Shown one piece after another: positions 611 to 38,371 of a DNA stretch of 64,000 nt. This DNA comes from Cyanophora paradoxa CCMP329 (Eukaryota > Plantae > Glaucophyta): NCBI GenBank assembly GCA_004431415.1, contig QPMI01000193.1:116787-180786 (forward strand), given 5' to 3'. The notes beneath the pieces were generated by a model. It searched no databases and was not told the DNA's origin. It was given only the letters and a program-made list of their open reading frames with translations. The translations under genes and the position numbers were made by a program. Each line of letters begins with the position of its first letter. Positions within the stretch are counted from its first letter, which is position 1.

Positions 611-3118
<2,508 letters not shown>

Positions 3119-6249: not shown

Positions 6250-6647
6250 CACCGTGGCACGCGCCGCTCAGCGGCTGCCCGCAGCCGAGCACGCTGCCCG
6301 GCACTCGTGCTTGAGCTTGCACCGCAAAACCGCTTGCGCCGCTGCCTAGCTGCGCCGCTGATCGCAGCAGAGCACGCCCGGCCGTCCAGACCGTGTTCTC
6401 TAGATCTTGCTGCGCTCAGCACGCCGCCGAAATCGAGCTTATACCGCAGTACCGCGTGCGCATGCGCCGCTGCCCGCAGCCGAGCACGCGTGACCGAGCC
6501 GAGGGGTCGCGCGCGAAGCGCGCGACCCCGAGGGGAGGACTCTGCGCATGTGCGTGCCACTAGGACTCTTTCATTAGATCTAGATCCCGGTTCCCCCCTT
6601 GCACGGAAGTTGCACCCCCGGCGCGAAAATCGCGGCCGGGCCACTAG
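6250..6647 (+). mobile_element. 3' portion of a non-autonomous Helitron/Helentron-like element (copy C); 5' boundary approximate
   Basis: Ends in CCCGGTTCCCCCCTTGCAC, a GC hairpin (CCCGGCGCG-AAAAT-CGCGGCCGGG) and CTAG, as at 28921 and 36294. 6344-6490 is repeated at 7463-7605 inside copy A. Confidence 0.65.
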
Positions 6648-8418: not shown

Positions 8419-9906
8419 TTGGAAACGGGGTAGGGCCCCCGTTTTCGGTAACTCACAAAATGACGAGTCTGCTCATCTCCCGATCCAGCTCCGAGCTCTT
8501 AACCCAGTGTTAGTGCATGCATAAGAGCCCCGAATTCGTTGTCAGAACCCGGAAAGAGCGGAATGCTGCGCGGAAAAAAGGACCGGACCCTTTCCTAAAC
8601 TATCCCTTGCAGCGCCTGATCCTGTGGTCGCATAGGGGCCGGACCAAGTGCATAAGAAAGCTCTTGCAATGCTCGGCAGAGCTTGTCATACATGCCAGTG
8701 CTCGGGAAGCAGCGCGTGGCGCGCTAGGCCGCATCAAGTACCTGTTGTACCGAACGCGGAATAACTTGGTGGCCTGCGGCCAAAAGGTCGGCGCTAGCCG
8801 TTCTTGCTTCAGCTTCGAGCTTGATCTCGAGCTTGAGACTCGCGATGAAGTCTGATGGTTTGAGCATTGAGCTTGAGCTCAAGCCACAAAGCCTGTGCTC
8901 AAGCGGAACGCGCTTGACAGCGAGCCAAGAGGCTTAATATAGAGCTCGAGCTTGAGCTCGATCGAGTTTGAGCTCAAGTTCATCGACCGGCTCTCTGTTA
9001 TTACCGAGTGTCGCCGCTCGGTTGTACCCGTCGCTCGCGATCGAAGTGTGCACCGAGTCGCTTCTCTCCTTGCGCGCGGGGGCGTCCTTGAGCATGTCGG
9101 GCATCAACTACATCTACGATTTAGATGTTTGAACGCGTTTCGGAGCTCCCACCGTGCCTGTATCGCGCAGCTGCAGAAGAGTCGCACACACATCGCGATC
9201 AGCAATTTCTTAGGCGAAGGCTTGTTTTTACGTGTAATCGCGTCTTTCGACGGCCACGCTTTCGGATCTGAGAAAATGGTCTGGAGATATTGACCTCCTC
9301 TACACTTTGAACGCGATTCCTGTTCGTCTGGTTCGTTCCTAGTCGAGTGCGCTCCTGCCAAAGAATTTGTATGAGAGCCATGAACTTAGAAGCAATTAAC
9401 GGCTAGCGCCGAAAAAAAGAGCTCCTGCGAGTTTCGGCCTATCGAGTTGCAGTACCCGTGCATTAAGCCGGCGAGCTAGCCGACAGGCTCGCTAGCTGGC
9501 CAGCGTAGCTAGGTGAGCTCCGGCGCCGGCTAGCGGCTTGCAGGACTTCAATTCGGCGCGCCGCGGCGCCGGCCGCCCGGCGCTGGCGCCGCCCCGGGCC
9601 ATGGCCAGCTGCAGCCTGCAGGCTGTACGGTTGCCGGCCGGCGCCGCGGCGCTGGCCACCTCAGCTCCGGATCCGCACTGCGGCAGCTGCGCATGCCGAT
9701 GCATATGGCGAGCTCGAGCTGATATCGATGCCATGATGCGCGCGCGCATGCGCAGCTGCACTGCGGCAGCTGCCGCAGTGCAGCTGCGCATGCCGATGGC
9801 GAGCTAGCTTATAGCGCTCGCCGAGTCAACTCGGCGAGCGCGAGCACCCAGCTAGCTCGACCTAGGCCTACCCCGTTTCCAACCGGCGGCCGCCGGGCCG
9901 GCCCAG
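8419..9906 (+). mobile_element. Second family of Helentron-like non-autonomous element, nested in copy A
   Basis: A 16-bp inverted repeat, TTGGAAACGGGGTAGG (8419-8434) / CCTACCCCGTTTCCAA (9867-9882). The left arm is part of a local hairpin (AAACGGGG..CCCCGTTT). The right arm is followed by a GC stem-loop and CCAG|T. Confidence 0.55.
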
Positions 9907-10029
9907 TCAGAGGCTCATGCATATGATCAGCGGCTCAGAGCCCGAGAAGAGGCCGCCGCGTGCTAGTCTATTTTTTTTAATCATAATCTGTGTTCAACGG
10001 TTTATCTTTAACCTTCGACCTGCCGCGCG

Positions 10030-10285
10030 TGTCGGATGAGAGGATTCCCACCCGGTGCAGCGTCCGTGCGGTCACGCACGGGCTGGGGCTGTAGCTGGGA
10101 GCACAAGTGGTCTATTCACAAGTGTACCCGTCCAGGGATCGCGTACCCCCAAACGGAGTCGCGCCCGGCGCTAAGTCAGAATACAGAGAGTGCTAGAGCT
10201 AGCTGCTCGATAGCACTAGACTAGGGCTAGCGGCTACGCATAGACTGCCGGCTAGCCTAATCCGAGGGAATCGCGGCACGCGACA
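10030..10285 (-). repeat. 3' LTR
   Basis: TGTCG...CGACA termini; no difference from 28433-28688 seen by eye. Confidence 0.97.
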
Positions 10286-10297
10286 ACTCCTCACTCT
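10286..10297 (-). other. Polypurine tract
   Basis: AGAGTGAGGAGT on the minus strand, immediately upstream of the 3' LTR. Confidence 0.7.
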
Positions 10298-10974
10298 GCA
10301 TACGGTGCGTCCTCGCACCGGACCGCGCCAAGCCGAACGTCGAGTCTGCATGCTCGACGGGGCGTCCACCCCACCGCCGGGGTGTGCACCAACCACGGCA
10401 GCGACAGGGCGGCGGCGAGTGAACTCCTCTCGAAGTAGAATGTCCGTCGTCAGCAACCAGATATGCCAGGTAGCATAGCTCGCGACCGAAATAGGAGCCG
10501 ATACCAGCATAGTGCATGTACCTAGGCAACCCCAGGCCAAGCTCGAAAGATGGAAAAGCATAGAACTCGAAACCCCCAAAAGCTGGCCCAAACTCGCTCC
10601 AACGGCGAGAGCCGAAGGAGAGTGGCACGGATGGGAAGTTTCACCGCCTCGGGAAGAAACCAGCGAGGAGGTATCCGGGCCGCCCATCAGGCCCAACGAA
10701 AGGATAGGGCACGACTGAGTGCACCCCCAGCCAGCAACCTCGAGCCCCTCACGGACCCGCAGGCACCCGGGAGGCCTACACCCAGCCACTCTCCACGAGC
10801 GACGGGCCCAGATCCCAGAAAATGGAACGAAAGGCCCAGATGGCGCCCCGTGATTGGCCACCAGCCAACCCACGTCCCACCTCGGAAGCCAGGGCTGAGG
10901 CAAAGCGGGCAAAGAAATCTGCCCCACGGCGCAAGCACAGCGATCGCAAAGGGAACAGCAATGGGACGAGCTTC

Positions 10975-13635
10975 TCACAGGTCGTCGACCAAAATCGCGT
11001 CATCCATCTCAACCTCGTCGCCCTCGGCAGCCCGCTCGGGGCCCTCGGCGTCGACGTCAGGGGCGAGAGGTGGATTTTGTTCTTGAGCGGGCGAGTCCGC
11101 GAGTGCGGGGTCGATCGCCGGCTCGTCGGCGTTCACAGCAGTCTTCCGAGGCCGACCAACGCGGGGACGGGCTTGAGACTCGGAGAGACGCGTGCGGAAC
11201 GGAAGCATGCAGTCGATGTGGGCAACAGTCTCACGCAGAGGACGGGTACGGGCATCGTCCTTGGCGGAGTAGGGCTTAGCCGACCCCTTGACCGTGTAGG
11301 TGTAACCGCCAGGGTTAACACCAGTCACAGTGTAGGGCCCGACCCACGAATTGTACAGCCCTTTGTTGTGTTCGCCCATCCAGCACAATACCTTGTCGCC
11401 AACCTCAAAGCGGCGACGATGAGGCGGGTTGCCGGTGCGAGCAACCATGCGGTTCCGATAGAACCGACGGTACTCGCGCGAGGCAGCGTCGGCGCTCGCG
11501 GCAGCTCGCGTCATCGCGAGAAGGTAATCAGCCGGGTGCGTGTGGTCGGGGTTCACGAAGCGGACGCCGGCTCCGAAGCGCACTTCGCAGGGCAGGTGCA
11601 CTTCAGAACCGCGGTGCAAGACCATCGGGGAGAACCCGGTGGCGGAGTGCACGGTGGTCCGCAACGCGAGAACGATATCGGCGTTGTAAAGAGGCCAGTC
11701 AGAGAGCGGCCGCTTGTGCTCACGGCACATGGCGTAAGCGAGAGTCTTGTAGACTCCGCCCAGGCGCTCGGCGCCGCCGTTCGAGGCGTGGTGGTAGGCG
11801 GCCGCGTGCACGAACCGGGTACCCTTCTCCTTGAAGAACGCGTTCCACGCGCCCCCAACGAGTTGGGACCCGCGGTCCGTCAGGATGCGCGCGGGCACGC
11901 CCTCGTGCGTATAGAAGTCGATCGCGGTGGCGAGCAAGGCCTCGCCGGAGATACGGGAGAGCGGGTAGATATAGCAGAACTTGGTGTATGCGTCGACGTA
12001 CGCGATGATGTATCGCGAACCGTCTTCGTGCATATCCAAGTGGAAGATATCCACCTGCCACAGGTCTCCCTTGCCCGAAGGCTGTATCACCTGAATGGCG
12101 GTACGGCGGGGCTTCGCGGCCTTCGCGAACTGACAGTGCGGGCATGACCGCACAAAGCGAGCGATGGAGGCGTACATGCCAGGCCACCAGAACCGCAGGG
12201 CGATCCGACGGGCTATCACGGGCGCGCCTCGATGGGCCCAGCCCTCGTGATAGGCGTAGAGCACCCTGTCGATCCAAGCGTCCGGCAAGACGGGTAGGAA
12301 CCGGCCGGCAGGGACCAAGGGGTTGCGCTCGATGACGCCGTCGTCGGCCAGGCTGAACTCGCCGGCCAGGCGTGCAAAGCGCTCCTTGGCCCGCAGGCAG
12401 TGAGCGCAGCTGGGCGAGCAGGGATCTGCGTCGCGCCTCGAGCCGCGGGTACAGACAGTTGGATTCTCGCCCTCTGCGTGGAAGGCGAGAAGCTTCTTGC
12501 AGAAGGAATCCTCCTTCTGAGCGGCGAGCAGACGCTTGCGCTTCTCGGGCGGGAACATACGGCGCAGCGCGTCGGGGAGCGCCCCATCGACGGCTGGCGA
12601 GGGTCCGCAGGCCCACGCGTCGAGGACGGTATCCACGAAGACCGGCTTGCACGGCGGGCGAACGTCCCGGCCTCTAGGGTCGAGTTCTACCCACCGCTGC
12701 GGGGCAGCGGCCTCGGCGGCGACCGTCTCAGGCTCGAGCGGGGCGGCGTCGTCGGAAGCCTGCCCGCGGGCAGAGGGGCGACCTCGAGCCCGCGGCGCTG
12801 GCTTGGGGTCCGGGGGGACCGGCCGAACGCGGATCTGGTGGCGAGCAGTCTCCGGGGAGAGCGAGCGTCGGCGCGGAGGCCCGGGAGGCGGCTCGCCCTC
12901 AGGGTCCTCCGGCTCCCACTCAATATGAATCGGCACCGGCCGATCCGAGGGGTCGACCGGGGAGCGCCAGTGGCGCGTGTTGTACTCATCTCGAGGCTGC
13001 CGCCTCAAGGCGGGGCCGCGAGGGAAGAGCGCGTCGGGATGCAGGGGCCGCGGCTCGGCAAATCCCTTGGCGCCCCACCGACGGGGCCCGGTTTCCGAGC
13101 GCTTCGGGACTCGCTCCGCAAGAGCGAGGGGGAAGCCGTCAGCGTCGCAGGCGTCGGAGGGGACAGGCCCTTCCGGCAGCGACTCGTCATCGATCTCGCC
13201 CGAGGCCTCGGCCTCTGCGTGAGCGTCCTCTAGCAGCGCGGCCGGGGCGCCCAGGTCGCCCTCAGGGGCGTCGGGCATCTCCGCGTCCGAGGGAGCCTCG
13301 CGCTCCTCGACAGCGGGCGCCGGGCCCGGCTCTCGTCGTTTCGGGGGCGGCGAGACCGACTCTGGCGCGGGAGGCGCGAAGCGCTCTGGGGCGGCCCGCG
13401 CTCGCTTGCGCGTGGCGGCGTCAGTAGCCGAGGCGGAGGCCTTGGCCTCAGCGAACCCAGCCGACGCAGCAAGCTTGGCGAGCTCGCGGGGCAGGCGTCG
13501 CGGCGCGCGCTCTGGCGGCGGGGGCTCGGCGTCGGAATCGGTTTCCGCAGCACCGCCAGCCTCACCCTCAGGCTCGGGCGCGGGCGCTTCAGGGGCGCCG
13601 GCGTCGGGCTCGGCCTCAGGAGCACTGGCTGGCAC
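10975..13635 (-). CDS. Pol C-terminal part: long acidic/Pro-rich spacer plus integrase
   Basis: HHCC zinc motif (AYHEGWAH...CPHC), DDE core (WQVDIF, ILTDRGSQ, SNGGAERL) and GPY motif (WVGPYTV); no chromodomain visible. Confidence 0.95.
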   Translation of the reverse strand: MPASAPEAEPDAGAPEAPAPEPEGEAGGAAETDSDAEPPPPERAPRRLPRELAKLAASAGFAEAKASASATDAATRKRARAAPERFAPPAPESVSPPPKRREPGPAPAVEEREAPSDAEMPDAPEGDLGAPAALLEDAHAEAEASGEIDDESLPEGPVPSDACDADGFPLALAERVPKRSETGPRRWGAKGFAEPRPLHPDALFPRGPALRRQPRDEYNTRHWRSPVDPSDRPVPIHIEWEPEDPEGEPPPGPPRRRSLSPETARHQIRVRPVPPDPKPAPRARGRPSARGQASDDAAPLEPETVAAEAAAPQRWVELDPRGRDVRPPCKPVFVDTVLDAWACGPSPAVDGALPDALRRMFPPEKRKRLLAAQKEDSFCKKLLAFHAEGENPTVCTRGSRRDADPCSPSCAHCLRAKERFARLAGEFSLADDGVIERNPLVPAGRFLPVLPDAWIDRVLYAYHEGWAHRGAPVIARRIALRFWWPGMYASIARFVRSCPHCQFAKAAKPRRTAIQVIQPSGKGDLWQVDIFHLDMHEDGSRYIIAYVDAYTKFCYIYPLSRISGEALLATAIDFYTHEGVPARILTDRGSQLVGGAWNAFFKEKGTRFVHAAAYHHASNGGAERLGGVYKTLAYAMCREHKRPLSDWPLYNADIVLALRTTVHSATGFSPMVLHRGSEVHLPCEVRFGAGVRFVNPDHTHPADYLLAMTRAAASADAASREYRRFYRNRMVARTGNPPHRRRFEVGDKVLCWMGEHNKGLYNSWVGPYTVTGVNPGGYTYTVKGSAKPYSAKDDARTRPLRETVAHIDCMLPFRTRLSESQARPRVGRPRKTAVNADEPAIDPALADSPAQEQNPPLAPDVDAEGPERAAEGDEVEMDDAILVDDL

Positions 13636-15433
13636 AGGGGCCGCGACTCCTCCTCTGCATAAGAGGAGCGGCCCGGCGGGGAAGAGGGGGCGCTCGCAGG
13701 CGCCGCCCGGGGCGCTCGGCGTCTAGCGGCTCGGCCACCCTCGGCTGGGGCTTCCGCGCGGAAGCCGGCGGAGTTGGCGAGCTGGCGCAGGGCCCGCTCG
13801 GTCGGGCCAGCTGCATCCTAAAGATGCCCAGCGGGACGTCGGGATCCTCAGGCTCAGCCCCTACAGCATGTTGCGGGATGCCGAAGCCTTCGGCGCCCTT
13901 GTAGGCCGCGGGCTTGGACGAGGAACCGTCTGCACCGCCTGGCTGCCAGACGGGGTGGTCCTTAGGGAGACGCGAGCACGCGTCGGGACCCCCGTTCTGC
14001 TTGCCAGGGCGGTAGACGATCTCAAAGTCGTAGGCCTGCAAGAGCAGGGACCAGCGACCGAGGCGGCCCGTCGTCGGGTCCAGCGTCTTCAGCCACTGGA
14101 GGGCGTGGTGGTCGGTCCGCACCAGGAACTGGGGGCCGCCCAGCAGATAGTGGCGCCAATACTTAATGGCCCAGACTACTGCGAGGCACTCCAGCTCCGT
14201 AGCGGAGTAGTTCATCTCGGCCGGCAGCAGCGTGCGGCTGATGAACGCGAGCGGCCGCTCGACGCCTTTGTCGTCGGCCTGGCTCAGAATTGCGCCGATA
14301 GCGTAGGTGCTGGCGTCCGTCTGGAGAATGAAGGGCTTCGAGAAGTCCGGGAACCGCAATATAATATCGCGGCCCAGGAGTTCTTTCAGCTCCTTAAAGG
14401 CGCGGTCGGCGGGGCCGTCCTCTGGCCAACTCCAGACGGCGTCCTTCAATAGAAGGCGCTGCATGGCGTGCACCACTTTGGAGAAGTTCTCGACAAAGCG
14501 GCGGTAGTAGCCGGCGAGGCCGAGGAACGAGCGGAGCTCGTCCGCGTTCTTCGGCGTCTGCCAGTCCGTGATCACCTTGGTCTTCGCAGGGTCCTGGCGG
14601 ATCCCTTCGGCGGAGATGCGGTGGCCGAGAAGGTCGATTTCAGGCACGCAGAAGCGGCACTTCGACGGCTTCAGGCGCAGGTTCGCCTTAGAGATCGTCT
14701 CGAAGAGCGCCTTCAAGTCTAGAAGGTGCTGATCGATGGACGGTGAGAAGACCGTGATATCGTCGATGTACGCGACGACGCAGGTGGTCAGCAAGGGGCC
14801 CAGGATCGCAGTGATCGCGCGGGAGAATGCCGCGGGCCCGTTCGTGACCCCAAACGGCGTAACCTTCCACTGAAAGTGACCCCAGGGGACCACAAATGCA
14901 GTGTAGGCTCGGGAGCCGGGGTGCAGAGGCAGCTGCCAGAAGCCGGCAGTCGCGTCAGCAGTCGAGAAGACCATCGAGCCGCGGAGGCGCTCGAGCTGGT
15001 CGTCTATGCGGGGTAGGGGAAACACGTCCCGCTCGGTGATCTGATTCAGCCTCCGATAGTCGACACAGAAACGCCAAGTGCCGTCCTTTTTGGGGGCCAG
15101 CACTACCGGCGAGCCATATGCCGCTTGGGAGGGCTCGATCAGCCCAAGCTCAAGGAGTTTCTGAATTTCCTTGCGGGCGTGTTCCTCGGCGTGCGGGTTC
15201 ATACGCCGCGGAGGCGTGAACACCGGAAGGCGAGTCGTGAGTTTGATCACGTGCTCGTAATAGAGCAGGTTGCTGGTGCCCTCTTTGGCCTCGACCTTGT
15301 CTGCGAAGACATCCTTGTAGCGCCGCAGGAGCGCGTGAAGTTCGGCTTTCTGCGCCGTCGTGATTGACGGGTGAGAGCCGAGCTCAGGAATCTTCTTCAG
15401 CAGCTCTTGCCACTCCTCCTCTGCATTAGGCAC
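13616..15433 (-). CDS. Reverse transcriptase-RNase H (Ty3/Gypsy type)
   Basis: KKDGTWRFCVDYRRLN, FPLPRIDD, PFGVTNGPAAF and YIDD; RNase H motifs QTDASTYAIGAILSQ, ELECLAVVWAI and TDHHAL. Confidence 0.97.
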   Translation of the reverse strand: MPNAEEEWQELLKKIPELGSHPSITTAQKAELHALLRRYKDVFADKVEAKEGTSNLLYYEHVIKLTTRLPVFTPPRRMNPHAEEHARKEIQKLLELGLIEPSQAAYGSPVVLAPKKDGTWRFCVDYRRLNQITERDVFPLPRIDDQLERLRGSMVFSTADATAGFWQLPLHPGSRAYTAFVVPWGHFQWKVTPFGVTNGPAAFSRAITAILGPLLTTCVVAYIDDITVFSPSIDQHLLDLKALFETISKANLRLKPSKCRFCVPEIDLLGHRISAEGIRQDPAKTKVITDWQTPKNADELRSFLGLAGYYRRFVENFSKVVHAMQRLLLKDAVWSWPEDGPADRAFKELKELLGRDIILRFPDFSKPFILQTDASTYAIGAILSQADDKGVERPLAFISRTLLPAEMNYSATELECLAVVWAIKYWRHYLLGGPQFLVRTDHHALQWLKTLDPTTGRLGRWSLLLQAYDFEIVYRPGKQNGGPDACSRLPKDHPVWQPGGADGSSSKPAAYKGAEGFGIPQHAVGAEPEDPDVPLGIFRMQLARPSGPCASSPTPPASARKPQPRVAEPLDAERPGRRLRAPPLPRRAAPLMQRRSRGPCASQCS

Positions 15434-16405
15434 CGGCCGCGGTGCCTCAGCGGGCTTCGCGTCGGGTGCTGCAGTCGTAGGGGTGGGGCATCGGGCCGGG
15501 CCGAAAGCGAGGCTGTGACCACACTCTGGGGTGGGGCCTCGGCGTCGGCGACCGGTGCGGCCTTGCGGACCGTAACGTCGCCGCGCATGGCGCGGACTGC
15601 ATCGAGCAAGTCGCGCTCCGCTTTTTCGGAGAGACCGGGGAAGGTCGAGCGCAGGGTGGCGTCTCTGGGGACGGACACTGCCTCGACTGCGGCGACGAAC
15701 TCGTCGACCGAGGGCCTGTGATCGGGGCCGGCGTTGGGGACGCGCTTCGTGACGACGTGCTCATAGCATCGTCGTCGAGGCTAATGATGCTCATAGCATC
15801 AAGGTCCTGCAACGGCCGGTCGGCTGTGTCGAAGGGCAGCTCGCCAAACGTGACGACTATATCGTCGACGTCGTAGGGCGGTGCGCGGGGTGGGTCGGCG
15901 GGCTCAGCAGGCGCTGCGCTAGACAGAGCGCGCTGCTTTTCCGCCTCATCTACGACAGAACGTAGGGTGGAGATTATTTTCTCAACGTCTTTGGCGGGCT
16001 CATATGCCGCGCCAAGCATGCGTGCTTTTCTATTAAAGTGGCGGAGTCCAGTGCGGCGTTTGGCAGGCACGATTCGCAGCCGGCGAATCAAGAGGTCTGT
16101 CAATGCACTCGCACTACAAGGCATTTGCTCAGGTTCGTACTCAAAATCACCAGGCGGTAGGGCGACCGCCGAAGCGACCGCTACTACCGATCCTAGCGGC
16201 AGGGTTACCGGCTGCCGGCCAGGATTGCACAACCGCACGTGAAACATTTTGTCTCCCGGGTGATTATGCAGCTGGTAAGGGCAGAGTACGCCCAAGGCTT
16301 GCGGGGACTCCGGCGACGGCTCGACGTAGAGGTGCGGCAACTCACGCGTTGCCGGGCCCTGCCCATTGAGCGTGCATGGGACGAGGGCCTCTCCGACGGG
16401 GAGCT

Positions 16406-17713
16406 TTACTGGTCCCAGGACTCGGACCAGGATCCCAAGCTGGTCCGGAGCCGAAAAGGGACGACGACTTCGCGGTGCAGGTGGTCACGGGCCCGGAGGC
16501 ACCACCCGGACAGCGTCGTGTCGATCTGGCCGTGGACGGCCTGGATCGCGTCCAGGCCGAGCAGAATGTCCGGCTCAACGCCCATGGCGCCGCGCGGGAC
16601 GACGAAGACGCGGCGGCAGAAGCGGAGCGAGCCCAGAACGAAGACTACGTCGGCGCGGCGACAACGAATTTTGTCCCGGTCCATGAAACCGCGGACTATC
16701 GTGTGGCCCTCGACGTAATTGACTTCGTCGGGCGGCAGGCGGTCGAGGACTTCCTGGGGAACTACAGTTCCCTGGGCGCCCGTGTCGACAACAATGCGAG
16801 CGGGCCGTTCAGCGCCGGAGCGGCCGTTCGGCAGGCGCATAGCAATGCTGCCGTGAATGTGCAGTGTCTTTGGCCGGAAGAATTCCAGGGCCCGGTCGCG
16901 CGGGAAGCTAGGTCGGGCGCGGCGGACGTGGAATTCTGGTTCCGGCGGCGCGGGTGGACCCGACAGGTCCGTTGCGCTTGCGGTTGGGGATGGGGGCCGG
17001 GACTGGCGAGCCGCGGCTCGCTCGGCGACTCGGCGCTGCTCTGCCTGGTCGGCCAACGGCGAGGGCTTGGTCCGCTTGCGCGGGCCCGGGCCGTGGCGGT
17101 TGGCGTAGAGCAACTCGTCGCTGGGCGGGTCATAGCCGGCGCGCGTTCCCAGCGGCGTCTCCTCTGCCGGGCGGGGCACGGCGAGGGACGGGCGGTTTTT
17201 GGAGCCCAGGGCGTGGCCCGCGGGCATGAGAGCTTCCTCGTCGGAGGTCAGGCCCTCGGGGTAAATGATCGCGGCGGCCTCGAGCGCGTTCTGCGGGGCG
17301 AACGCCGCTGTCGGCGCTGAACCCGAGAACCACGCGCGAGTCGGCCGTGGCGGGGCCTTGTAGCCCGTTTTGCGCATCGAGATGCCGTAGCGGTCCATGA
17401 TCGCCTGATGCACCGCGCGTAAGGCGGGCTCCAGGGTCTTTGGATCGACCTGCAGCATTTGCGCGGGGTTCGACAGCCAGTTGAAGACCAGCACGGTCGA
17501 GCGCGGCCCGAGCTTGTGCAGCAGGCGGCGGGCCCAGGCCGGCGCAGGCTCGCGGCTCTTTGGTGGGGCCGGGGCGGGCGGCGCGGCTGGCGCCGGCGGC
17601 GCGACTGTTTGAGCGGGCGGCTCGTGGACGACCGTCTGGACGCGGCGGATCGAGATGTACTTCTCGTCCGCCGGCACCGGCACAGCGGCCCGGACCGACG
17701 CCGGCGTATGCAA
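16406..17713 (-). CDS. Retropepsin-like aspartic protease region
   Basis: IVVDTGAQGTVV active site and DILLGLDAI C-terminal motif. Confidence 0.9.
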   Translation of the reverse strand: MHTPASVRAAVPVPADEKYISIRRVQTVVHEPPAQTVAPPAPAAPPAPAPPKSREPAPAWARRLLHKLGPRSTVLVFNWLSNPAQMLQVDPKTLEPALRAVHQAIMDRYGISMRKTGYKAPPRPTRAWFSGSAPTAAFAPQNALEAAAIIYPEGLTSDEEALMPAGHALGSKNRPSLAVPRPAEETPLGTRAGYDPPSDELLYANRHGPGPRKRTKPSPLADQAEQRRVAERAAARQSRPPSPTASATDLSGPPAPPEPEFHVRRARPSFPRDRALEFFRPKTLHIHGSIAMRLPNGRSGAERPARIVVDTGAQGTVVPQEVLDRLPPDEVNYVEGHTIVRGFMDRDKIRCRRADVVFVLGSLRFCRRVFVVPRGAMGVEPDILLGLDAIQAVHGQIDTTLSGWCLRARDHLHREVVVPFRLRTSLGSWSESWDQ

Positions 17714-20700
17714 GTGGGCGGGAAGGTCACAGGGCGCGCGGGCCTCGTGCCCGCGGGGTGACGACGCTTCTGCGACGGTGTATACCGCGAAGAAGGGCTT
17801 TGGTTGGCTTTTGCCGCGGCCTGCATTGCCACGCGAGCCTCGTGCTGGCGCTCGCGCTCAAGCAAGGCTCGCCAGTCTTTGGTGCGATCGAGCGTGGCCC
17901 GCAGAGCCTCGAGATCGGCACGGGGCCCGTCTGGGAGGAGCGAGATCATCATGCCCGTCTCCCCAGCGGAGAGGCTGATCTGCATATCGATGCCGGCCCG
18001 GAGGGCGCGGCAGACGTCTTCCAGGGCCCGCCGAGCGGCCTGCTTTGCCTGGGCGAAGGCTTCGTCTGAGACCTTCTGAGCGCCGCCGGGCTTGGCGCGC
18101 GTCTCGGCGTGGCTAGCGCGGTGCGGATCTGGCGCTCGACTGTTTGAAGCCAAAGCCCCAATTCCGTGACCCCTTGGCCCCGGATCTTCACGTCGCGGCA
18201 GCTCGAGCACTCGCGCACAAACTGCAGGAGGCCCCTGCTGGGACGTCAGCCTGGGGGTTGAAAGTCGTGGCGGCGGAGGCGCGCGGCGCGGCCACTGAGG
18301 CGCGCGGCTGCTCCGGCGTCGACTGGTCTGCGCGCGGCGGCTCGGCCTGGCTCGCACGCGATGACCGCTCCTGGGCCTGAGAGATGGAGGCGCGACCCTC
18401 CGCAGGCTTGGACGGCGCCGCCGACTGCGGACCGGCCTCGCTCTGCCCCTCAGGCCCCTCTAGAAAGGGCTGCTGGCGCTCGTTGCGTCCGCCGTCGGCG
18501 GCTGCCCACCGATGGTGGCGCGGCGGCGCGGGCGAGGACGACGCGGACTGAGCGTCCATCTGGTTCTGGAGCTTGATCAGGACCAGCGCGGTGGCCTGCT
18601 CAGCTCGCGCGGACGCCGAGAGCGAGTCTGGCATCTCAGCGTACTGCGCCTTCCAGACCATGTCGAAGAGCTCGCGCAATGTGGGCGGGCAGCCTCGCAG
18701 GCGGGCGTCGTTCTCGTGCCGCTTGTACGCAGCGTCTACGGCGCCGCGCGGCGGGTCCGGCGGGCGGCGAGAGGACTGGCTGCTGCGAGGGCTGCGGCGG
18801 TCTCGCGGCGAGGCGCGGTCGCGCGAGCCCTTCTTCGAGCTTTTGCGCCGCTTATCGTCATGGCGGGGCTCCGGCTCGGGCTCCGATCGCGCGAGCGCGA
18901 GCGGGAGCTAGAGCGGGACGGTGTTCGGCTCCGGCGGCGTTCCCGCGAGCCTCGGCGAGGGCTCCGCCTGTCGCGAGTGTCGCGAGCCGTGGACCGTCGG
19001 CTCGGCGGGCTGCGGTCGCGGCGCGGCGGCGAGCGATCACGGCGGTCCGGGAGCGGCGGCGGGAGGCCTCGCGGTCCCGGCGGTCCGGCGAAGGGCGTCG
19101 GGAGCCCTCGCGATCGCGGCGTTCCAACGAACGGCGGGACGGCGGCGGCGCCGGGATTGCCGGTGGGGCTCCGGGGAGCGCTCGCGGCGCGTGGAGGGGC
19201 CCGCGTCTCGCGCCTGTCTGGGGTGCGAGAGCGGCGACTGGACGGGCTCGGCGCGGCTCGGGTGTGCGCGAGCGGCGCTGAGACGAGGCCCGCTCAGGGT
19301 CCGGCGGGCCTGCGACGCGCGACTGGCCGTGTCGTCCCTGCGGCTCGAGCTTGCCTCGGCCTGGCGGCTCGAGCTGGGCGGCGGCATCAAGGTCCGGGAG
19401 GGAGTCTCAGCCGGCGGGGCTTGGTCTGGCGGAGCGCTCTCGGCGATCCGCTCGACCTTCACCTTCCCGTCCGAGACGGTTACGCGCATGGTCTTGGGGT
19501 CATACCCCTGCTGCCGCGCGAGGAACGCATCCAGCCCGAACGGGTCGTTCGGGTCGACAGCGGGTTGTGCGGGTTGCGCCTGGCCACCGCCGCGGTCGCC
19601 GCCACGGTCACGGTGGCCTCGGCCGTCGCGACCGCGGTGCCGGCCGCCCCGCTGGTGACCCTGCCCGCGGCCGCCTCGGCCAACGGCCTGGCCCGCGTTG
19701 CGCCGGGGCCGCGCCTGCTGCGGCGCCGTCGGCGGCGCGGCGGTCTGCGCAGCGGCCTGCGCCGGCGCGGGCGCCGACGGGGTGGCGGATGGCGCCGCCT
19801 CGGCGGGTCGTCCGCGAGCCCGCCGACGATGGTTGAGGGCGGCTGGAACCGCACGCCCGCCCACGTCGCGCGGACCGCTCCTTCGTAGATCGGCTGGTAC
19901 GGCGTGCGAACCAGAAGGCTTTCGGCCTCCTTATCGACAGCCGCCGTCGCAGTCAGGCTGCGCCGGGCCGAGGGCGCGGCGCCCTTGTTCTGGACCGCGT
20001 CCCACATCAGCGCCGGGCGCAGAGCCTCAACGTCCCAGTCGGGGAGCACGGGGTCGTCCGTCTCCCAGTCGATCGGGCGCGCGAGGCGGATCGCGACATT
20101 CAGATCGGCGTAGAGCGAACGGAGCATCGTCTCGAACTGAGGCCGCAGGGTATAGCCTCATCGGTAAAGATGAGCCCCAGCGGGAAGTTCCCGGGACAGT
20201 TCTCCAGCTCCTCGGCGGCGCGGGCGGCCTCAAGGTGGCGCTGTATCCCACTCTTGCCCCGGCGCCAAGGTCATCGCCGGCGGGCCACGCGTCCTCGGCG
20301 CCGGCCATCGGGGGCGAGCCGAGCTCAAGACGCTGGTACCCGAGACCGTGCGGCATGTTTGTGAGGTACGCGCGGATGCCGTCCGCCAGCGCGCGGGCAT
20401 CCGAGTCGGCGCACTCATCCCTCGTCATAGTGCGCAAGAGGGCCCTGAAGACCTCGGCCACGTTCTGGGCATGGCGGCGTTCAGGGGCGCACAGTTGTCC
20501 ACCCGCTGCGCGAGCAGCGGGATGCGGGATACTGGAAGCCCTGCAGCATCGCGAGCAGGATCCGCCCACAGATCGCCGCACGACCCTCGTGGTCCGGCAC
20601 GACCGCATTGTTCGGGCCAAACTTCCACGCAAGCGTGGGATGACCGTCCGGGTACGTCGGCCTCGCGTCCGCGTCGAAGACCTTCTTGCCCTGAGGCAAG

Positions 20701-23700
20701 ACGTCGGACCCGCGGTCCGGCTTGGCCGTCGGCTTAGTCAGGAAGGCCTCGTGAATGAACACCATCAGACCGTCCGGCACCACGCAGCGGAACGAGTTCA
20801 ACACCTTGTTGAAGTCATCCATGTGATCGGCGACCGCCCGAGCGATCTCGGGGACGTAGTCAGCCGGGCGTTCCGACTCGACGTCCATGGCCGCAGCCGA
20901 CAGAAAGTCATCAGCCCAGTGCTGGCTGCGGAGGTGCTTGCCCGGCGCGTGACGCTGGAAGAAGCGCGCGTGCCAGGCCAGCGTAAAACCGATGGCCGTC
21001 GCGAGGATTTCCTCTTCCGCCGGGATCGGCGCCCAAGGGCACGTCCCCGGAGGTGAGTTCGGGAAAGGCGGCAGCTCGTAACCGAACGCGGTGACGAGCC
21101 GCGGGTTCGCGTGGCTCTTCTTGGGCTGGCTCGCAAGCTGGGCGACCGTCACTGCGAGCCACAGCTTCTTGTTCTCGCGCTGGTGCGGCGCGCCCCCTGC
21201 GACGTCCTTGTCGCAGGCAGCGTTCGGCGCGGGCGTGGCCGTGCCTGCCACGAGGCGGGGCGCGTAGATGCGCCGCGTCTGCAGGCGACCCTCAACGTTC
21301 TCGACGCGCTTGTCGGCGAGCGGGCGCAGCAGGGCCAGCACGGCGACGTCGCGCGCGAAGCGGGTCGCGAACGGCGTCCTGGCGTCCTCCTCGTTCGGGT
21401 CGGCGATGTTACCGCCCAAGACTGAGGTGTGCAGGGTGGGCGCTCGGGGTGCGGCATGTACGGCGGCGGGGCGTTCCGCGCGCCGCCGCCTTCGTGGAAG
21501 AAGGCGGTATACAGCACCCGCGAGACCTGGCCCAGGGTCGAACACACGGGTGCGTGGGCTGTGCCCTCGTGCGTGAGATCCCAGGCGCCCGTGTACGTCG
21601 GGACGGCAGACTGTGCGGTACGGGTCCCGACCGCGAGTACTGCACGATATCCAAGCTGACGCCGCAGGCGGCGTGCGGGAATGCAAGCCCCTGCAGGTCG
21701 AAGAGCTCCGGATCCTCGTCGAACGGCCGCTGAGGCGGGCCTACGAGCGAGAACCAGTTCACTATGCCGCGCGCGGCGGGGCCGACGCGCTTGAGCATAG
21801 TTGAGCACAGCTCGCCCATGTGCTGGTCCTGCAGCGTGAGCACGTCGACGTTGTACTCGTCAACGTCGCCGGCGTGCTGCCAGCGCAAGGGGTAGCTGAT
21901 CGCGGGCAGCGTTGCCCATTCAGTGAACCCTGGCTCATAGCATTCCAGGGGCCGGAAAAACGCGTGTTTCCGGTCCATGTACTCGCGCAAGAGCTTGTGA
22001 TCGTTGGCGTACGTCGGGTCCGCCAACGAGAACAGCGGCCGCGGCTGCCAGTCCTTGTGCGGCTCGAACGGCCTGTGCGCCGCCGCAGGGATGGCAGCCG
22101 GCGCCTCTTCCTTCTCGCCCTCTTCCTCTTCGCTCTCGACATGGTCAATGTCGAGCGGCTCGAGGCGGGGCTCAGGCTCATCGGCGATGTAGGTGCCCAC
22201 AAGCGCATCGTCGAACGTGAACGACTGCCGTGCAGCGTGACGCTCGAGGGCATGCAAGACCTTCTCCTGGAAGGCCGCGCGCTGGGCGGTCAGGGCCAAG
22301 CCCCTGTGCGGGTCGCTCTCGGCGGCTTCCTCCTGCGCGCGCGTCCCTAGCTGCAGGTGGCGGCGCAGCCAGCGAACCCCGTACGGGAACTCCAGGCCGG
22401 CGCGTTCCGCGGAGGAACGGTGGTCCCAACCGCCTCGGCGCGGAACATGGTGTGAGCACGCAAGAGGTACTGGGCCCACTGCGGCGGGATGACGGCCGCG
22501 CTCGGGTTGAAGCGGCCCCCGTGCGTCCACCGCGGCAGGCGCGTGGCAGGGATCGTCCAACGCAGAGTCAGGAAGTGCTCCAACTGCTGCTCCGTCCACT
22601 CATGCAGGTGGAACGGGAGATCGTGGGAGTGGGGCGTGACGGGGCCACGGAGCCCCAGCGCGATCATGAAGAGCTCGAACGCGGCCGCGTTGAGCCGCGC
22701 GAGGCGAACGGTGCGATCGGCTCTGAGCGCGACGCGGCCCTCCGGCGGCTCCTCGTGCGGCACGGGCGGCCCATCCAGGCGGTTCTGGATTGGCGTGCTC
22801 CTCTCGCTGGCGAGAAACGCCTTGAGGTGCGGGACCCGCAGGTCCTCGAACGTGCCCTTCAGTGCGTCGAAGGGGATGCTCCAGCGGTGGGCGAGATCAG
22901 ACCGGGCCGTCATGGGCCACTCGGTGATCTGTTTCCCCTCACAGAGCCGAGGCGGGCACCCCGGCACTGCGAGGACGCCGCTCATCACGCCATAGCCTCG
23001 TACAGGGCCCGCTGGCTCAGGTTCTCATCGATAGCCGACGGCGGCGGCGGCGGCGGCGCTTCCTCGGGCGCCTCATCGCCGTCGCCCCGCTCGCCCATCT
23101 CGGCGTCTTCCCCTCAGCCTGCCCACGGCGGGCGCTGCGGGTTCGTGGCCCCTGCGAGCCGCGCCCACGGGTGCTGACGCGCACGACCCCGTCCCGCGGC
23201 CACGCTCGCCGCGACGGGCGGCCTGCCGGGAGCCGGCGCGGTCGCGCGCGCGACGTCGAGTAGCGGCTCGCTCAGGCGAGGCTCGACAGGCGCGGGCTCA
23301 GTGGCGGGCGGCGTCGGAGCGGCGGTGGGCCGCGGCGCCATCGGCTCGCAAGCGGCGGCCATGTTGCCGCGGCGTGCAAGGTCACGAGCTTCGCCGTCGG
23401 TGCAGGCGGCGGGACAGGAACGGGCGCCGGCCGCGCCGGCGCTGGCGGGTCCCTCGGCGAGAGCGCCTTCACAGGCGGGCGCGGCGGCAGGCAGGCCTTA
23501 GCCTCCTTGATCGTCGCGCTGACGGCCTTCGCCGTGTAGGCGCCCGTCGTGTCCGACGCCGGCTTCGGCGTGGTGGGCAGGTCGTGGAGAGGAGTGGGGG
23601 TGCGGCTGCCTGCATCCGTGCGCCACTTCTCCACGAGCGCGATCATGTCCTTGACAGCCTCGTCATTGAAACCGGCCCGCTTCTTCAGCAGCCTACGGAA

Positions 23701-26200
23701 TAGAATGACGAGGTGGGCCCGGTCGCCCGCCTTGGCCCCCTCGATGTACCGGAGCAGCTCCGCGGCCCCGGCGGATCCGGGAACCGTGCGGGCCCAGGCT
23801 GCATCGCACAGGGCGGTGAGCGGCGGGCGCGGGCCGAGCTGGCTCAGCACGTAGAGCTCCTCAGGCACGATCGTGGGCAGCTGCCCGCCTCGCGTCGTGC
23901 CGTGCAGGGGCAACTGCGTGGTGCGCGTGATCGGGCGCACGCGGCCGACCCTCCACGTGCCAGGCTCTGCCCCGTGCAGGCGCGGCCAGTGCAGCCAGGT
24001 GTCGCACAAGTGCAGGTCCCGGAGGTGCAGAACGCGGGCGGCGGCGACGCGGGGCTCCACCGGAACGCGTTCAACCGTGCGGGACTCGCCCTCGCTCACG
24101 ACCGGGAAGGCGGGGCACGGCCGTCGCGGTACGCGGTCAGACGCTCCGCGAGCGCTGCCCGCAGCCATCCCTCGGCGTCCCGATCCGAGCGGAGACGTGC
24201 CCGCCCGGGATCGGAACCTCAACGGAGGCAGCCAGGACGGCAAGCGAGTGAACGGCTTCCGTGAACTCCGAGTCCGAGGGGACAAGAGGGTTCCCGTCGG
24301 CCAGGGCAACGGCGCTCTTGTGGGCGTCGTGGGGACCGGCGCGGCCGCCGATGCAAGCCACGGTCTTCCACTGGATCGCGTGCTCGAGGGCCAGCAGGGC
24401 GAAGCCATAGGCGTCGACCCGCGCGTCCACCATGAGCGGCTCGGCGAACTTAAAGAAGCGGCCGAGGATCTTCTCGACGGCGCCGGCGGTGCCCGGGGCA
24501 CCGTAGTCGACGCGGTGCAGGAAATAGCCCGCAACAGTCGAGGCGCACGCAAGGCGGAGGCGGTCCTGTGCCGGCAACAGCTCGCTCAGCTCGATTAGCT
24601 GGCGCGGCCCGACACTGTCATCTCGTGCGGCTCGAGAGAGGCCGCCACGGGCGAGTGCTGGCCAATGCTCCAGTGGCGGCGGTATGGCTCCAGCCAGCCG
24701 GCGGTAGCGACGCACTCGTCCCCAAGCTTCGTAAGCTTGTGGGCGTCGGGCTCGACTGCGGGGCGACCCTCGGGCGTGAGGCCCTCGGCGTGCGGCCACG
24801 CGTGGCCCCGGCCCACTTCGCGGCGACGCGAGAGGCCTGGTGCGTGAGGCTCATGATTTCATAATAGTGCGTCGGCCAGGCGTGAGCCAGCGTGTCCTGG
24901 GACAGCGGGTCATGCCCCAGCATCTGCAGGAACGCAGTGGGGAGGGTCCGCGAGCCGAGGTACGTGCTCTCGGTGGCGAGCGGCTGAGAGAACGCCGCAA
25001 GCAAGAAGGAGAGCGTCTGGCGGGTGCGGGCCGGGCAGCGGAACGCAGTGGCATACCACTGCTCGTCCCGGACCTCGATCAGCCCCTCGCTCACAGTGCA
25101 GCCGCAGTGAGTCTCGCACGGCGCTGGTACAGGAACGCCGCGCGGTCGAGCGGGACCGACGCGGCGCCCTTCAGCTTGTGCGCGTCCACGTTCCAGAGAG
25201 GAACGGGCCCAGCTCGTGCTCGCGGCCCTTCACCGGCTCTAACTCAACGGCTCCGAAGTGAGTGAGGTCTAGGCCGGGGCTAGCGCTGAGGAGGCGAGCG
25301 CGGTTGAGGCGCAGGGTCTCCTTAGACGCTACGGTCGCGTCCTCGTCGGCGAGGGAGGCGCCGTCGTCGGTCACCTCGAGGCTCGCTACCGTCTCGGCCC
25401 CGAGGAGTACCCCAGGCAGCAGCCCACGCCGGCGGCGGGGTCCGCCGGAGCCTCGGCGGCGGCGGTCTCGGGGACCGACTTGGTGGGAGCGAGCTCCGTC
25501 GCGGGCTCGGGACCCTTCGCTTCTGCGTCAGCGCCCTCGACCTCCGTTGGGTCCGGGGCGGCCGCCAAGAGGAGTGCGACCTCCTCAAGGGCGGCGTCCA
25601 CGATGCCGGCGGCGAGCTCGGCGGGGAAAGAAGTCGGCACGGGCGTCGGCGCGGGACCCTTCGCTGCTGCGTCAGCGCCCTCGACCTCCGTTGGGTCCGG
25701 GGCGGCCGCCAAGAGGAGTGCGATTTCCTCGAGGGCGGCGTCCACTGCGTCGAACGCGACCTTCTTCTCCCCTCGTCCAGGCCCGACTCCGGGCGGGTCG
25801 GCAACAGGTCCTGCGCCTCGCAGGGGCCGGCCTCTCGGCTCCCGTGGGGCACAGGTCTGGGCGGCTTTCCCGGACAGCTGCACTACTGCGATCGCGAAAG
25901 CGGTGGCGGCTGCGGCGACCGCGTTGAGAGCGGGGCCGTCCCGGGGTCCTGCAGCGCGGCGGCGTGCGCCGCGGCCGCTGCGGTGAAGGCTCGGAAGGTA
26001 TCGTCGACCAACGCCTCGTCGCTGCGCACGATGCGCACACGGTACACGTGCTTTTCCTTGCCAAGCTCGGCGGGCGCCGGGCCGCCGTGGGCCCCGACCC
26101 GTGGCCGCCGGTCGGCGCGGGAAGCAGTGCAGTCGCGGACGGGCCGGCGGCGCCGCTTCGGGCAGCCTGCTCGAGCATGGCGCGCGCGATCGTGAAGGCG
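17714..26200 (-). CDS. ~8.5-kb run of overlapping, frame-shifted ORFs of unknown function between Gag and protease
   Basis: Protein-like, same-strand ORFs abut one another (25094-24618, 24799-24137, 24552-23272, 22988-22347, 22599-21409, 21686-20481, 20632-20027, 20127-19480, 18679-18188, 18357-17248). No domain recognised. Confidence 0.7.
25509..25745 (-). repeat. Two ~93-bp coding direct repeats within the retroelement
   Basis: Encodes DAALEE(I/V)ALLLAAAPDPTEVEGADA(A/E)AKGP twice. Confidence 0.85.
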
Positions 26201-26206
26201 TTGGGG

Positions 26207-27888
26207 TCAGCCCAGGGCGCCGGCGTCGCGGGCGGCACGGGCGGGGCTGCAGCGGCGGCGGCGTGTTCTGCAAGCGCGCGGCGGACCGCGGCCTCGAGCG
26301 TCTGCGCCTGGGCCGGCAGGACGCGGCCAGGTGGCCGGTTTGCCGCAGTTGTAGCACGCCCGGGGCCCTGCAGCTTGCTGGGGCGGGGGCTCGAGCGGCC
26401 GTTCCCACCTGCGGCGCGGGGTAGAACCGGCGCTTCGGGTCACCGGTGCCTGCGCCCGTTGGCCCGCGGCGCTTGGCCGGGTTGATTGCCGACCACTCGG
26501 CAGAGGCCGCGGGTTGGTCCGGCACTCAAACGAGTAGTGCGACTCGCCGCAGTGGCACGGCCGCCGGGGCTTCTCGGGGAGACCCCGGGCCTTCAGGAAG
26601 TCTTTGATCTTCTGCTGATAGACCGGGTCGTCAAGGCGGGGCGGCGGTGCGGACGCCGACGGGTAGAGCGCGCGGACTACGACGAGGGGCTCGTCCCGAG
26701 CAATGAGCTGCAGGAACGAGATGACCTCGGCGTTCTGATCCTCGGCGTCGTCCGCGTCCCACCCGTACGCGTTTGCCTCAAGCTCTGCGATCTCGGCTTC
26801 CGACACCGTCGTCGCGAGCATGATGCGCGTGCCCGCGCCGGCGCCCGCGTTCGAGCGCGAGGGACGACGGGGACAGCTGGCGTGTGCGTGATCGGCGGCG
26901 CGCTCTGCGGCGTGCGCGAGGCAGCCGTGGGCGCCTGCAGCGGCGTCCCGCGCGAGCCCAGCACTAGGGCCGAGCCGGGGACTTTGGAGATATCGACGTC
27001 CCAGGCGCCCAGTTCATTGGTGCGCTTGGTTACCAGGTCGATGACCGCAGAGGGTCCCGTGATCTCGCGGTCCGCGATCTTCTGCGACAGCTCGTCATAG
27101 ATCTTCCGAGCCGTGGAGAAGTTCGTCATCATGTGCCGGCGATCGGTGTCCGAAATCTCGGAGTCTTCGAAGTCGCGGCACTGATTGCGAGTGCGGCGCT
27201 TGAGCATCTGGCCCGCGTGGCGCATGAGTGCCATAAGCGGTGTCTCGTGCGCCTCGCGGCACTCCGGGATGATGCTCAAGTCGAGGACGCGGCGATAGAA
27301 CGCCTCCGGCGCCTCGCCCACGTGCGGCAGGTCGAGGAGCGCCTTGTACCGGTCAGGGTTCCGCATCTCGGCGTCATCTTCGAGACGGCGCCTGATCGCG
27401 GTGTACGTGACCGTGAGGGCGGTCCGCTGCAAGCCCTCCTCGGCTTGCGCGATCTTCTCGTCGAGCGTCTCGAGGATCGCGACGTCTCGCGGGTCCGCCG
27501 TGCTCGTGCGCGCACGCTCGGCCCGGTACGCCTTCAGCTTCTCGAGCTCGCGAGTGTCGATCTGCTCGGCGCTCTGGAACAGCGAGATGTTCTGGCGCAC
27601 GGGGTGCCCGTGATCTAGCGTGCCGAGAAGAGCCCACCCAGTTCGCTTCTGCACTTCAATGTGTGCAGTCGGCGAGACACTGAGCAAGTCCTTGCTCATG
27701 CTCGCGCAGCTCTCGAACTGGCGGAGGTGGTCCTGAACCGTGCGCTGATCGCTGCCCGGCGGCAGCTTCGGCAGGCTCTGGATCCATTGCAAAACATTTG
27801 ATCCGCTCATAGAGTCCATGTCGGCGGCGCCACGCGCGTGCGCGGCCCGGACGACGAACTCCGCGGAGGCTCCGGTCCCCGAGGACAT
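26207..27888 (-). CDS. Gag (capsid plus two zinc knuckles), frame-shifted
   Basis: LPKLPPGSDQRTVQDHLRQFE and the MHR-like HVGEAPEAFYRRVLDL. Knuckles are CHCGESHYSFEC and CYNCGKP/GHLAASC, the latter split by a 1-bp deletion. Confidence 0.8.
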
Positions 27889-28432
27889 TCTCAGGTCAAG
27901 CGGCGACGTAATGCCACGCTTTTCCGTGAGAGAATGTGCCTCGCTCGAGATCCGAGGCCGTCGTGGTCCACAGCAGCGGCGAGCAAGCTCACTAGCTCGG
28001 CTGCGGCGATTCCGGAGACAGCTCGGGCGCGCACGCCTCAGCCGTCGATCCGATCGCTCTTCGTCTTGTCCAGCACGATCGCAACAGCCGGAGAAGGCTG
28101 GCGTCGCGGCGAGTGACTAGCGACCGATCAGGAATGATCCCACGGGCTCGCACGCAGCTCGCTCAGGAAACGGCGACGATCCGATCGGGACGGGGATCCC
28201 TCGGTATTCGCGCGCGTTCCTGGATCCGCAGGACTAAGTTCTGGTTCTTTCCAGAATGTTCGGTCGCCAACTGCGGATCAGCCCGGAGCGGCGCAGGCGG
28301 GGCGCGAGAAGCGACCCACGACCTCTGCTGAGGTCTACCTGCGCGCCGGCTGAGCCGCGGTCGCCGAGCTGGGTCGGTTGCTGATGACGGGTCGCTGATG
28401 ATCGGGGTTGGGCTCCGTGAGCAGATGGCGCC

Positions 28433-28688
28433 TGTCGGATGAGAGGATTCCCACCCGGTGCAGCGTCCGTGCGGTCACGCACGGGCTGGGGCTGTAGCTG
28501 GGAGCACAAGTGGTCTATTCACAAGTGTACCCGTCCAGGGATCGCGTACCCCCAAACGGAGTCGCGCCCGGCGCTAAGTCAGAATACAGAGAGTGCTAGA
28601 GCTAGCTGCTCGATAGCACTAGACTAGGGCTAGCGGCTACGCATAGACTGCCGGCTAGCCTAATCCGAGGGAATCGCGGCACGCGACA
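28433..28688 (-). repeat. 5' LTR
   Basis: 256-bp direct repeat of 10030-10285. Confidence 0.97.
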
Positions 28689-28991
28689 GCGCGCACTGGG
28701 CCGGGGTCGATCTGCCGCGCGCATGTGGCGTGCCACTAGGACTCACGGCGGGGTCCTTGAGGTCGACGCCGGACTTGGCCGCCTCCGTCGTGACGGTCTG
28801 CGCATGCAATATCAATTAAGCTTTAAGGTGCCATTAATTACGTTTTAATTAATGTAGTTTTTCATTAGATCCCGGTTCCCCCCTTGCACCCCCGGCGCGA
28901 GAATCGCGGCCGGGCCACTAGTATGTACTATATATAATCGGACGTCCCGGTCCGACGCGAACGGTCGCCCCCAGCTAGCGCTGCAGTACTA

Positions 28992-38343: not shown

Positions 38344-38371
38344 GCATGGAATTCGTAGGTGAGAGAGGGAA

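Follow-up and report, generated by a model that had tools for sequence, protein, structure and literature searches.

The subject of this study is a giant retrotransposon of Cyanophora paradoxa CCMP329, an alga of the glaucophytes, located at positions 10030 to 28688 of a 64,000-nucleotide stretch of contig QPMI01000193.1 (positions 116,787 to 180,786), which in its full length is here called the window. The element is 18.7 kb long, is encoded on the minus strand, and most likely specifies a single polyprotein, Gag-X-Pol, with about 5,650 amino acids, half of which is orphan sequence, with X referring to an extra region inserted between the Gag-like part and the protease. The proposed layout would comprise a Gag-like region with 2 zinc knuckles, about 2,800 lineage-specific amino acids, an aspartic protease (PR), a spacer of about 480 amino acids, reverse transcriptase (RT) with RNase H (RH), a second spacer of about 580 amino acids, and an integrase (IN) with a GPY/F motif. 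The element is a member of a young multi-copy family in C. paradoxa, of which no description was found in the literature searched. We consider it highly probable that the copy in the window is a recent and probably autonomous Ty3/Gypsy insertion, that almost all of its internal region is one frame of about 5,650 codons, and that the breaks observed in this frame are consensus errors.

Structure and classification of the element

The direct-repeat search of the window yielded one long pair, at 10025-10285 and 28428-28688. Reading of the end sequences placed the long terminal repeats (LTRs) at 10030-10285 and 28433-28688, with TG...CA termini and identity at all 256 positions, bordered by a target-site duplication (TSD) of 5 bp. 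The terminal features of the element are as follows:

28433..28688, minus strand: 5' LTR, 256 bp, TG...CA, 256/256 match to 10030-10285
10030..10285, minus strand: 3' LTR, 256 bp, from the repeat search and the reading of the ends
10025..10029, unstranded, with a second copy at 28689-28693: TSD GCGCG (5 bp), present once in the empty-site paralogue
28415..28432, minus strand: candidate primer-binding site, immediately following the 5' LTR, starting GGCGCCATCTGC and without TGG, proposed from its position only
10286..10299, minus strand: putative polypurine tract GCAGAGTGAGGAGT, adjoining the 3' LTR upstream, assigned by position and composition

A paralogous empty site was identified at 36133-36182, where the joined flanks with one GCGCG align without gaps across the junction at 44 of 50 positions, and colinear patches follow beyond it at 36232-36305 and 37592-37653. 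The direct LTRs, the TG...CA ends, the TSD, and the empty-site paralogue identify the element as an LTR retrotransposon, and one that is very young and recently integrated. The first-pass annotation of this DNA had described an 18.7-kb, very young element with tiny, identical LTRs of 256 bp, an intact TSD, and an empty site at 36150-36180, all of which was borne out by these observations.

No further copies of the element or of its LTR were found within the window by the repeat search. The window-wide scan for tRNA genes returned none, so that the candidate primer-binding site was matched to no tRNA, and a Tf1-like self-priming complement to this site was sought in the LTR and not found. The window-wide RNA scan likewise gave no Rfam family.

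The domains of the pol region were assigned as follows:

16544..16807, minus strand: aspartic protease, VDTGA at 16775-16789, Pfam Asp_protease_2 with E=7e-5 and 23.9 bits, which is under the gathering score of 24.3 bits
14615..15094, minus strand: reverse transcriptase, YIDD at 14759-14770, Pfam RVT_1 (2e-35) and Ty3 RT 4ol8 (1.6e-85)
14030..14407, minus strand: RNase H, Pfam RT_RNaseH (1.7e-40)
11764..12285, minus strand: integrase with HHCC zinc domain and D,D,E core, Pfam Integrase_H2C2 (1e-13) and rve (3e-12)
11326..11346, minus strand: GPY/F motif WVGPYTV in the C-terminal region of the integrase

The Pfam matches follow the order PR-RT-RNase H-IN on a single strand, and the catalytic motifs VDTGA, FCVDYR, YIDD, HHCC, and D,D,E are intact. 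The assignment of the protease is additionally backed by 2 motifs, VDTGA and LLGLD. In comparisons with solved structures, the RT-RNase H region gave E-values of 1.6e-85 with Ty3, 1.6e-49 with a caulimovirus, and about 1e-28 with retroviruses, and the integrase matched the PFV and Ty3 integrases in the Protein Data Bank (PDB). The 880-aa piece that contains the integrase had no Pfam match to a chromodomain and carried the GPY/F motif only. The spacers are unusually long, with about 480 amino acids between PR and RT and about 580 between RH and IN, and both were without a Pfam match. Judged by its sequence, the element is of the Ty3/Gypsy type (Metaviridae-type) and lies on the minus strand. 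The Gypsy identity proposed in the first-pass annotation is thus supported by the domain order, by the match of the RT to Ty3, and by the GPY/F motif after the integrase.

The proposed giant reading frame and its breaks

The GC content of the window is about 70% and long open reading frames (ORFs) arise by chance on both strands, and therefore ORF length alone is no proof of coding. On the minus strand, a strong three-base periodicity (GC3 minus GC2) was observed near-continuously from about 27.9 to about 11.3 kb, with frequent changes of frame. A Viterbi model of codon usage, trained on 4 confident segments, called 15.2 kb of coding sequence in 36 pieces between 27864 and 10978 on the minus strand (score 838), versus only 2.1 kb on the plus strand (score 30). 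The stretches left uncalled by the model are read as protein in sister gene models. The coding region starts with the ATG at 27888 and ends with the stop at 10975-10977, a span of 16.9 kb. Joined together, its pieces would amount to about 5,650 codons, and coding sequence makes up about 91% of the 18.7-kb element.

10975..27888, minus strand: giant Gag-X-Pol frame, about 5,650 codons with about 38 single-base gaps, from periodicity, Viterbi, and frameshift-aware alignment to sister models

The first-pass annotation had proposed same-strand coding from 27888 to 10975 amounting to roughly 5,600 codons if joined; the extent, the strand, and the total hold, but the frame is cut by these breaks. 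Its attribution of the size of the element to protein coding agrees with LTRs of 256 bp and a coding signal of about 17 kb. It was also noted that the stops that seem to lie in frame, at about 23113 and at 18908-18910, are located outside the true frame, and that the sister models P0016, P0017, and P0018 read through both.

The sister models are C. paradoxa proteins in the EukProt set EP00741, named in the form tig000xxxxx_gNNNNN.t1, of which 18 were retrieved; the genome paper of 2019 uses this naming too (PMC6704402). Look-ups by exact protein for the DNA of the sister copies returned no records. A frameshift-aware protein-to-DNA alignment was written and run with the sister models from other contigs, and these were found to cross the breaks of the window at single-nucleotide resolution and without skipped bases:

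P0010 versus the window: 610/610 amino acids identical, 3 window deletions crossed
P0004 versus the window: 427/428 amino acids identical, 4 window deletions crossed
P0007 versus the window: 562/576 amino acids identical, 9 window deletions crossed
P0001 versus the window: 539/557 amino acids identical, 6 window deletions crossed
P0018 versus the window, whole length: 3134/3150 amino acids identical, 32 window deletions and 2 insertions

The total of about 38 breaks is composed of the deletions relative to P0018 and 6 shifts required by the codon model in pol. All of the frame changes introduced by the Viterbi model (27/27) correspond to one missing base (-1). Examples of the breaks are those at 26864, 26496, 26334, 26314, 22411, 21635, 20524, 20465, 20146, and 19802, and one is located within the CCHC knuckle at 26316-26356, which measures 41 nt versus 42. 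The other copies bear single-base gaps of their own, at different positions.

The published C. paradoxa assembly was produced from PacBio RSII reads with Canu 1.0, 2 rounds of Quiver, and Illumina correction, and the genome has a GC content of 67.6%, with LTR elements accounting for only 1.77% (PMC6704402). The breaks most likely represent deletion errors of the homopolymer type that remained when the consensus of this GC-rich, multi-copy repeat was built from long reads. We judge them to be technical because all are 1-nt deletions, private to the window, and accompanied by almost no substitutions. As a side observation, uncorrected consensus indels in GC-rich repeats may also break other genes and inflate the counts of orphans in the annotation.

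The frame changes could alternatively be spliceosomal introns or programmed ribosomal frameshifts, in which case the element would be expressed from multiple exons or multiple ORFs. The genes of C. paradoxa are indeed rich in introns (PMC6704402). Furthermore, the shift near 17800 is a -1 shift, and -1 frameshifts between gag and pol are common in retroelements. However, the sister proteins cross the breaks with nothing skipped, which rules out introns as the cause of the frame changes, one of the breaks is situated within the CCHC knuckle, and about 38 programmed shifts would be implausible. We consider this explanation unlikely as a whole, while a reduced form of it, with just one real -1 site where the X region passes into PR, is possible.

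Rather less probable still is that the copy is a decayed, non-autonomous pseudogene in which the frameshifts are real deletions. The breaks are present in the sequence as given, and the indel rate would predict only about 1.2 events in 512 nt of LTR, with which the observed zero differences are compatible. Neutral decay predicts several substitutions per indel and mixed indel sizes, whereas the breaks are exactly 1-nt deletions (32 versus 2 insertions against P0018, and every change in the Viterbi path) and private to this copy, with no amino acid change in 610 residues across 3 breaks and 16 changes in 3,150 residues across 32 breaks. The private sets of breaks in the other copies argue against decay as well.

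Several points weigh against the main interpretation of the element. The window does not contain a single open frame but roughly 40 pieces, separated by the single-base breaks, and real mutations are formally a possible source of these. None of the retrieved gene models matches the window break-free, so that the window may stem from an assembly other than the published PacBio RSII/Canu one, and the tie between the breaks and the chemistry of that assembly is tentative. The continuity from the X region (at about 17800) into PR and through pol is predicted by the codon model only, and the artefactual -1 shifts could conceal a real junction of gag and pol, for instance a programmed -1 frameshift near 17800. 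Furthermore, the Gag-like region is putatively assigned from its position and the zinc knuckles, and the candidate primer-binding site is non-canonical.

The region between Gag and protease

Upstream of PR, the following features were recognized in the window:

26863..27888, minus strand: putative Gag-like N-terminal region, starting MSSGTGASAE, the start being conserved in both families
about 26525-26563, minus strand: second knuckle, CHC-type
26316..26356, minus strand: CCHC zinc knuckle, 41 nt and not 42, Pfam zf-CCHC in the sister models P0018 and P0001
25493..25762, minus strand: 144-nt tandem duplication encoding a repeated Ala/Leu/Glu-rich motif of 48 amino acids, from the repeat search
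23542..25398, minus strand: orphan conserved block A, about 570 amino acids, predicted to be mostly helical, 53% identity between the 2 families
19807..22991, minus strand: orphan conserved block B, about 1,000 amino acids, 45-48% identity between the families
19579..19681, minus strand: RGG-rich low-complexity stretch
18790..19300, minus strand: Arg/Ser-rich (RS-like) low-complexity stretch, with R41 and S22 per 100 amino acids in P0018

A word search with the first ORF gave matches only to the EukProt C. paradoxa proteins. Gene models from no fewer than 13 other contigs contained colinear pieces of the region from 26.8 to 18.4 kb, and P0018, a model of 3,082 amino acids from tig00021572, extends from the Gag methionine at 27888 to 17962, just short of PR. 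The segments of this protein are:

P0018 1-330: Gag-like region
P0018 440-500: the 2 zinc knuckles
P0018 about 650-730: duplicated 48-aa motif
P0018 750-1300: conserved block A
P0018 1300-1450: Pro/Ala-rich linker
P0018 1450-2480: conserved block B
P0018 about 2500-2620: RGG tract
P0018 about 2620-2830: Arg/Ser-rich tract
P0018 after 2830: short helical segment before PR

A diverged family, represented by P0017 (2,303 amino acids) and P0016 (1,795 amino acids), has the same MSSGTGASAE start and aligns with P0018 from end to end, with 42% identity over 2,230 amino acids, the conservation being even along the alignment and dipping only in the Pro/Ala-rich linker. It was also noted that the members of the diverged Gag-X family, P0016, P0017, and P0003, come from tig00020849, tig00000658, and tig00000158 and show 42-64% amino acid identity. 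The presence of the same Gag-X layout in a second, diverged family indicates that the giant architecture is old and has been maintained. Because the middle 9 kb is colinear and in frame both in the sister copies and in the family of 42% identity, its sequence comparisons identify it as part of the element, with Gag and the extra region forming one conserved frame.

Searches for relatives of this region were largely negative. No Pfam Gag or capsid domain was detected in the N-terminal 330 amino acids, and zf-CCHC was the only Pfam match outside of pol when every minus-strand ORF, the refined pieces, and the long sister models were scanned. A phmmer search with 600 amino acids of block B against 1.84 billion cluster representatives returned 6 matches, all of them from C. 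paradoxa. The profile searches of the PDB with blocks A and B gave nothing below E=0.2, and no relatives of block A emerged when contigs of viral, prokaryotic, and metagenome origin were scanned for its pattern. The AlphaFold2 models, which were built from the family alignments, had pLDDT values of 37 for block A and 29 for block B and were unusable, because these alignments are shallow. In P0018, neither a signal peptide nor a recognizable catalytic motif was found in the extra region, and the one conserved hydrophobic stretch, at residues 597-620, is weak and Ala-rich.

The extra region of about 2,800 amino acids thus appears to be lineage-specific and without a known relative; as a matter of speculation, its RGG and RS tracts may hint at RNA binding or nuclear targeting. 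The Arg/Ser-rich tract at 18790-19300 resembles the RS domain of SR proteins, which is unusual for a retrotransposon, and contains 39-nt tandem repeats at 19033-19137. We put forward tentatively, and with less than even confidence, the stronger proposal that the product of the family is a polyprotein of about 5,650 amino acids without interruption, half of it consisting of conserved domains found nowhere else in the 1.84 billion clusters, and that it represents an independent origin, in a deep-branching alga, of giant polyproteins with accessory proteins of new folds and possibly an SR-like module for the handling of RNA.

It is very improbable that the element is an endogenous retrovirus-like agent in which the extra region is an in-frame envelope or fusion protein, as was proposed for the giant planarian element Burro. 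The position between gag and PR is the same as that of the Env-like region in Burro (PMC6431247), and the hydrophobic stretch of P0018 is conserved. However, this single Ala-rich segment is accompanied by neither a signal peptide nor a Cys-rich ectodomain, and the region shows no similarity to Pfam or PDB entries, the models being too poor for a comparison of folds. Finally, the first-pass annotation had itself raised a separately nested middle region, absent from sister copies, and a nested element or captured host gene private to this copy can be dismissed as exceedingly improbable, although no Pfam domain lies between the zinc knuckles and PR and the size of the element is unusual, since the middle 9 kb shares strand and frame with gag, contains no internal repeats or ends, is colinear and in frame on at least 13 contigs, including the 3,082-aa model, and in the family of 42% identity, and had no non-element paralogue in C. 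paradoxa or elsewhere in the searches that were run.

Flanking sequence and comparison with known elements

The host sequence on both sides of the element had been labelled a rolling-circle copy. This label could not be confirmed, because no Rep or helicase domain of the Helitron kind was found in the flank ORFs of at least 220 amino acids. The flanks share only short patches, with 78-94% identity, with the ~36-kb paralogue:

6340-6812, 7459-7605, 28860-28930, and 29735-29796: patches in the flanks of the element
35254-35415, 36232-36305, and 37592-37653: their counterparts in the paralogue

We further noted a perfect 48-nt palindrome at 9746-9793, which lies about 240 bp upstream of where the element inserted, and a perfect 126-nt tandem duplication at 32306-32556, in the flank of lower GC content. 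The segments 1-6000, 38000-42000, and 52000-64000 have a GC content of 69-79% and contain long ORFs on both strands. There was no meaningful Pfam match in 6 sampled ORFs (1103-2338, 4994-6238, 39185-40174, 39616-40623, 51478-52377, and 52381-53808), the sole match being a sub-threshold, low-complexity hit to Trypan_PARP with E=0.00098. These high-GC blocks probably represent host genes with many introns, or else other repeats.

Judging from Ty3/Gypsy elements, the 5' LTR would drive transcription of the element, and translation of the transcript would give one Gag-X-Pol polyprotein, in the manner of Tf1 and other single-ORF elements. The polyprotein would then be cleaved by the element's own aspartic protease, with the extra 2,800 amino acids released as one or more accessory proteins. 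Reverse transcription would use 2 priming positions, one beside the 5' LTR and the other at the polypurine tract, and integration would yield the 5-bp duplication.

Ty3 provided the best solved-structure match for RT-RNase H (4ol8) as well as a match for the integrase (7q5b), and has in common with the Cyanophora element the order PR-RT-RH-IN, short LTRs, and a 5-bp TSD. However, Ty3 is 5.4 kb in size and has separate GAG3 and POL3 frames, whereas the Cyanophora element exceeds it in length by a factor of 3.5, apparently consists of one frame, and contains long PR-RT and RH-IN spacers. Tf1 of Schizosaccharomyces pombe produces Gag and Pol as one polyprotein without a frameshift, and its single-ORF expression is a plausible model for the Cyanophora element. 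Tf1 is about 5 kb long and self-primes, whereas the LTR of the Cyanophora element has no complement to the candidate primer-binding site.

The Ogre and Cyclops elements are likewise large Ty3/Gypsy elements, from plants, with extra ORFs of unknown function (PMC6431247). In Ogre, however, the LTRs are 1.9-6.5 kb long and non-coding DNA is present, and the extra ORF is separate and located upstream of gag, in contrast to the LTRs of 256 bp found here. The first-pass annotation traced much of the size of large Gypsy elements to long LTRs and non-coding DNA, which holds for Ogre but is not general, the exception being Burro (PMC6431247).

The Burro/GYPSM1 elements are giant Gypsy-like elements of planarians (Grohme et al. 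2018; reviewed by Arkhipova and Yushenova 2019, PMC6431247). Their ORF1 polyprotein of 4,873-5,140 amino acids carries Gag and CCHC knuckles N-terminally, followed by many extra domains in frame before PR (PMC6431247). The likeness to the Cyanophora element consists in a size driven by coding sequence, a single huge polyprotein, and thousands of residues in frame between Gag and PR. Burro is, however, more than 30 kb long versus 18.7 kb and resides in an animal rather than a glaucophyte alga. Its extra domains are recognizable (BIR, BCL2-like, MATH, ankyrin, dUTPase, and Env-like), whereas the 2,800 amino acids of the Cyanophora element match no family, and the Pfam scans detected none of the Pfam domains reported from Burro (BIR, BCL2, MATH, ankyrin, and dUTPase). 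Burro may thus be regarded as the closest known analogue, by a likeness of architecture only.

For LTR retrotransposons, the demands of transcription, reverse transcription, and packaging are believed to set a size limit of about 10 kb. To our knowledge, elements in which the excess length is coding sequence are rare, with Burro as the main case. A second and unrelated case, found in a glaucophyte and combining tiny LTRs with a coding share of about 91%, would mean that Gag-X-Pol gigantism has arisen more than once. If true, the polyprotein of about 5,650 amino acids would exceed ORF1 of Burro and be among the longest retroelement proteins described. For C. paradoxa, the many gene models of this family would represent transposon fragments broken by consensus indels and not orphan genes of the host, and the element offers about 2,800 amino acids of conserved, uncharacterized protein for study.

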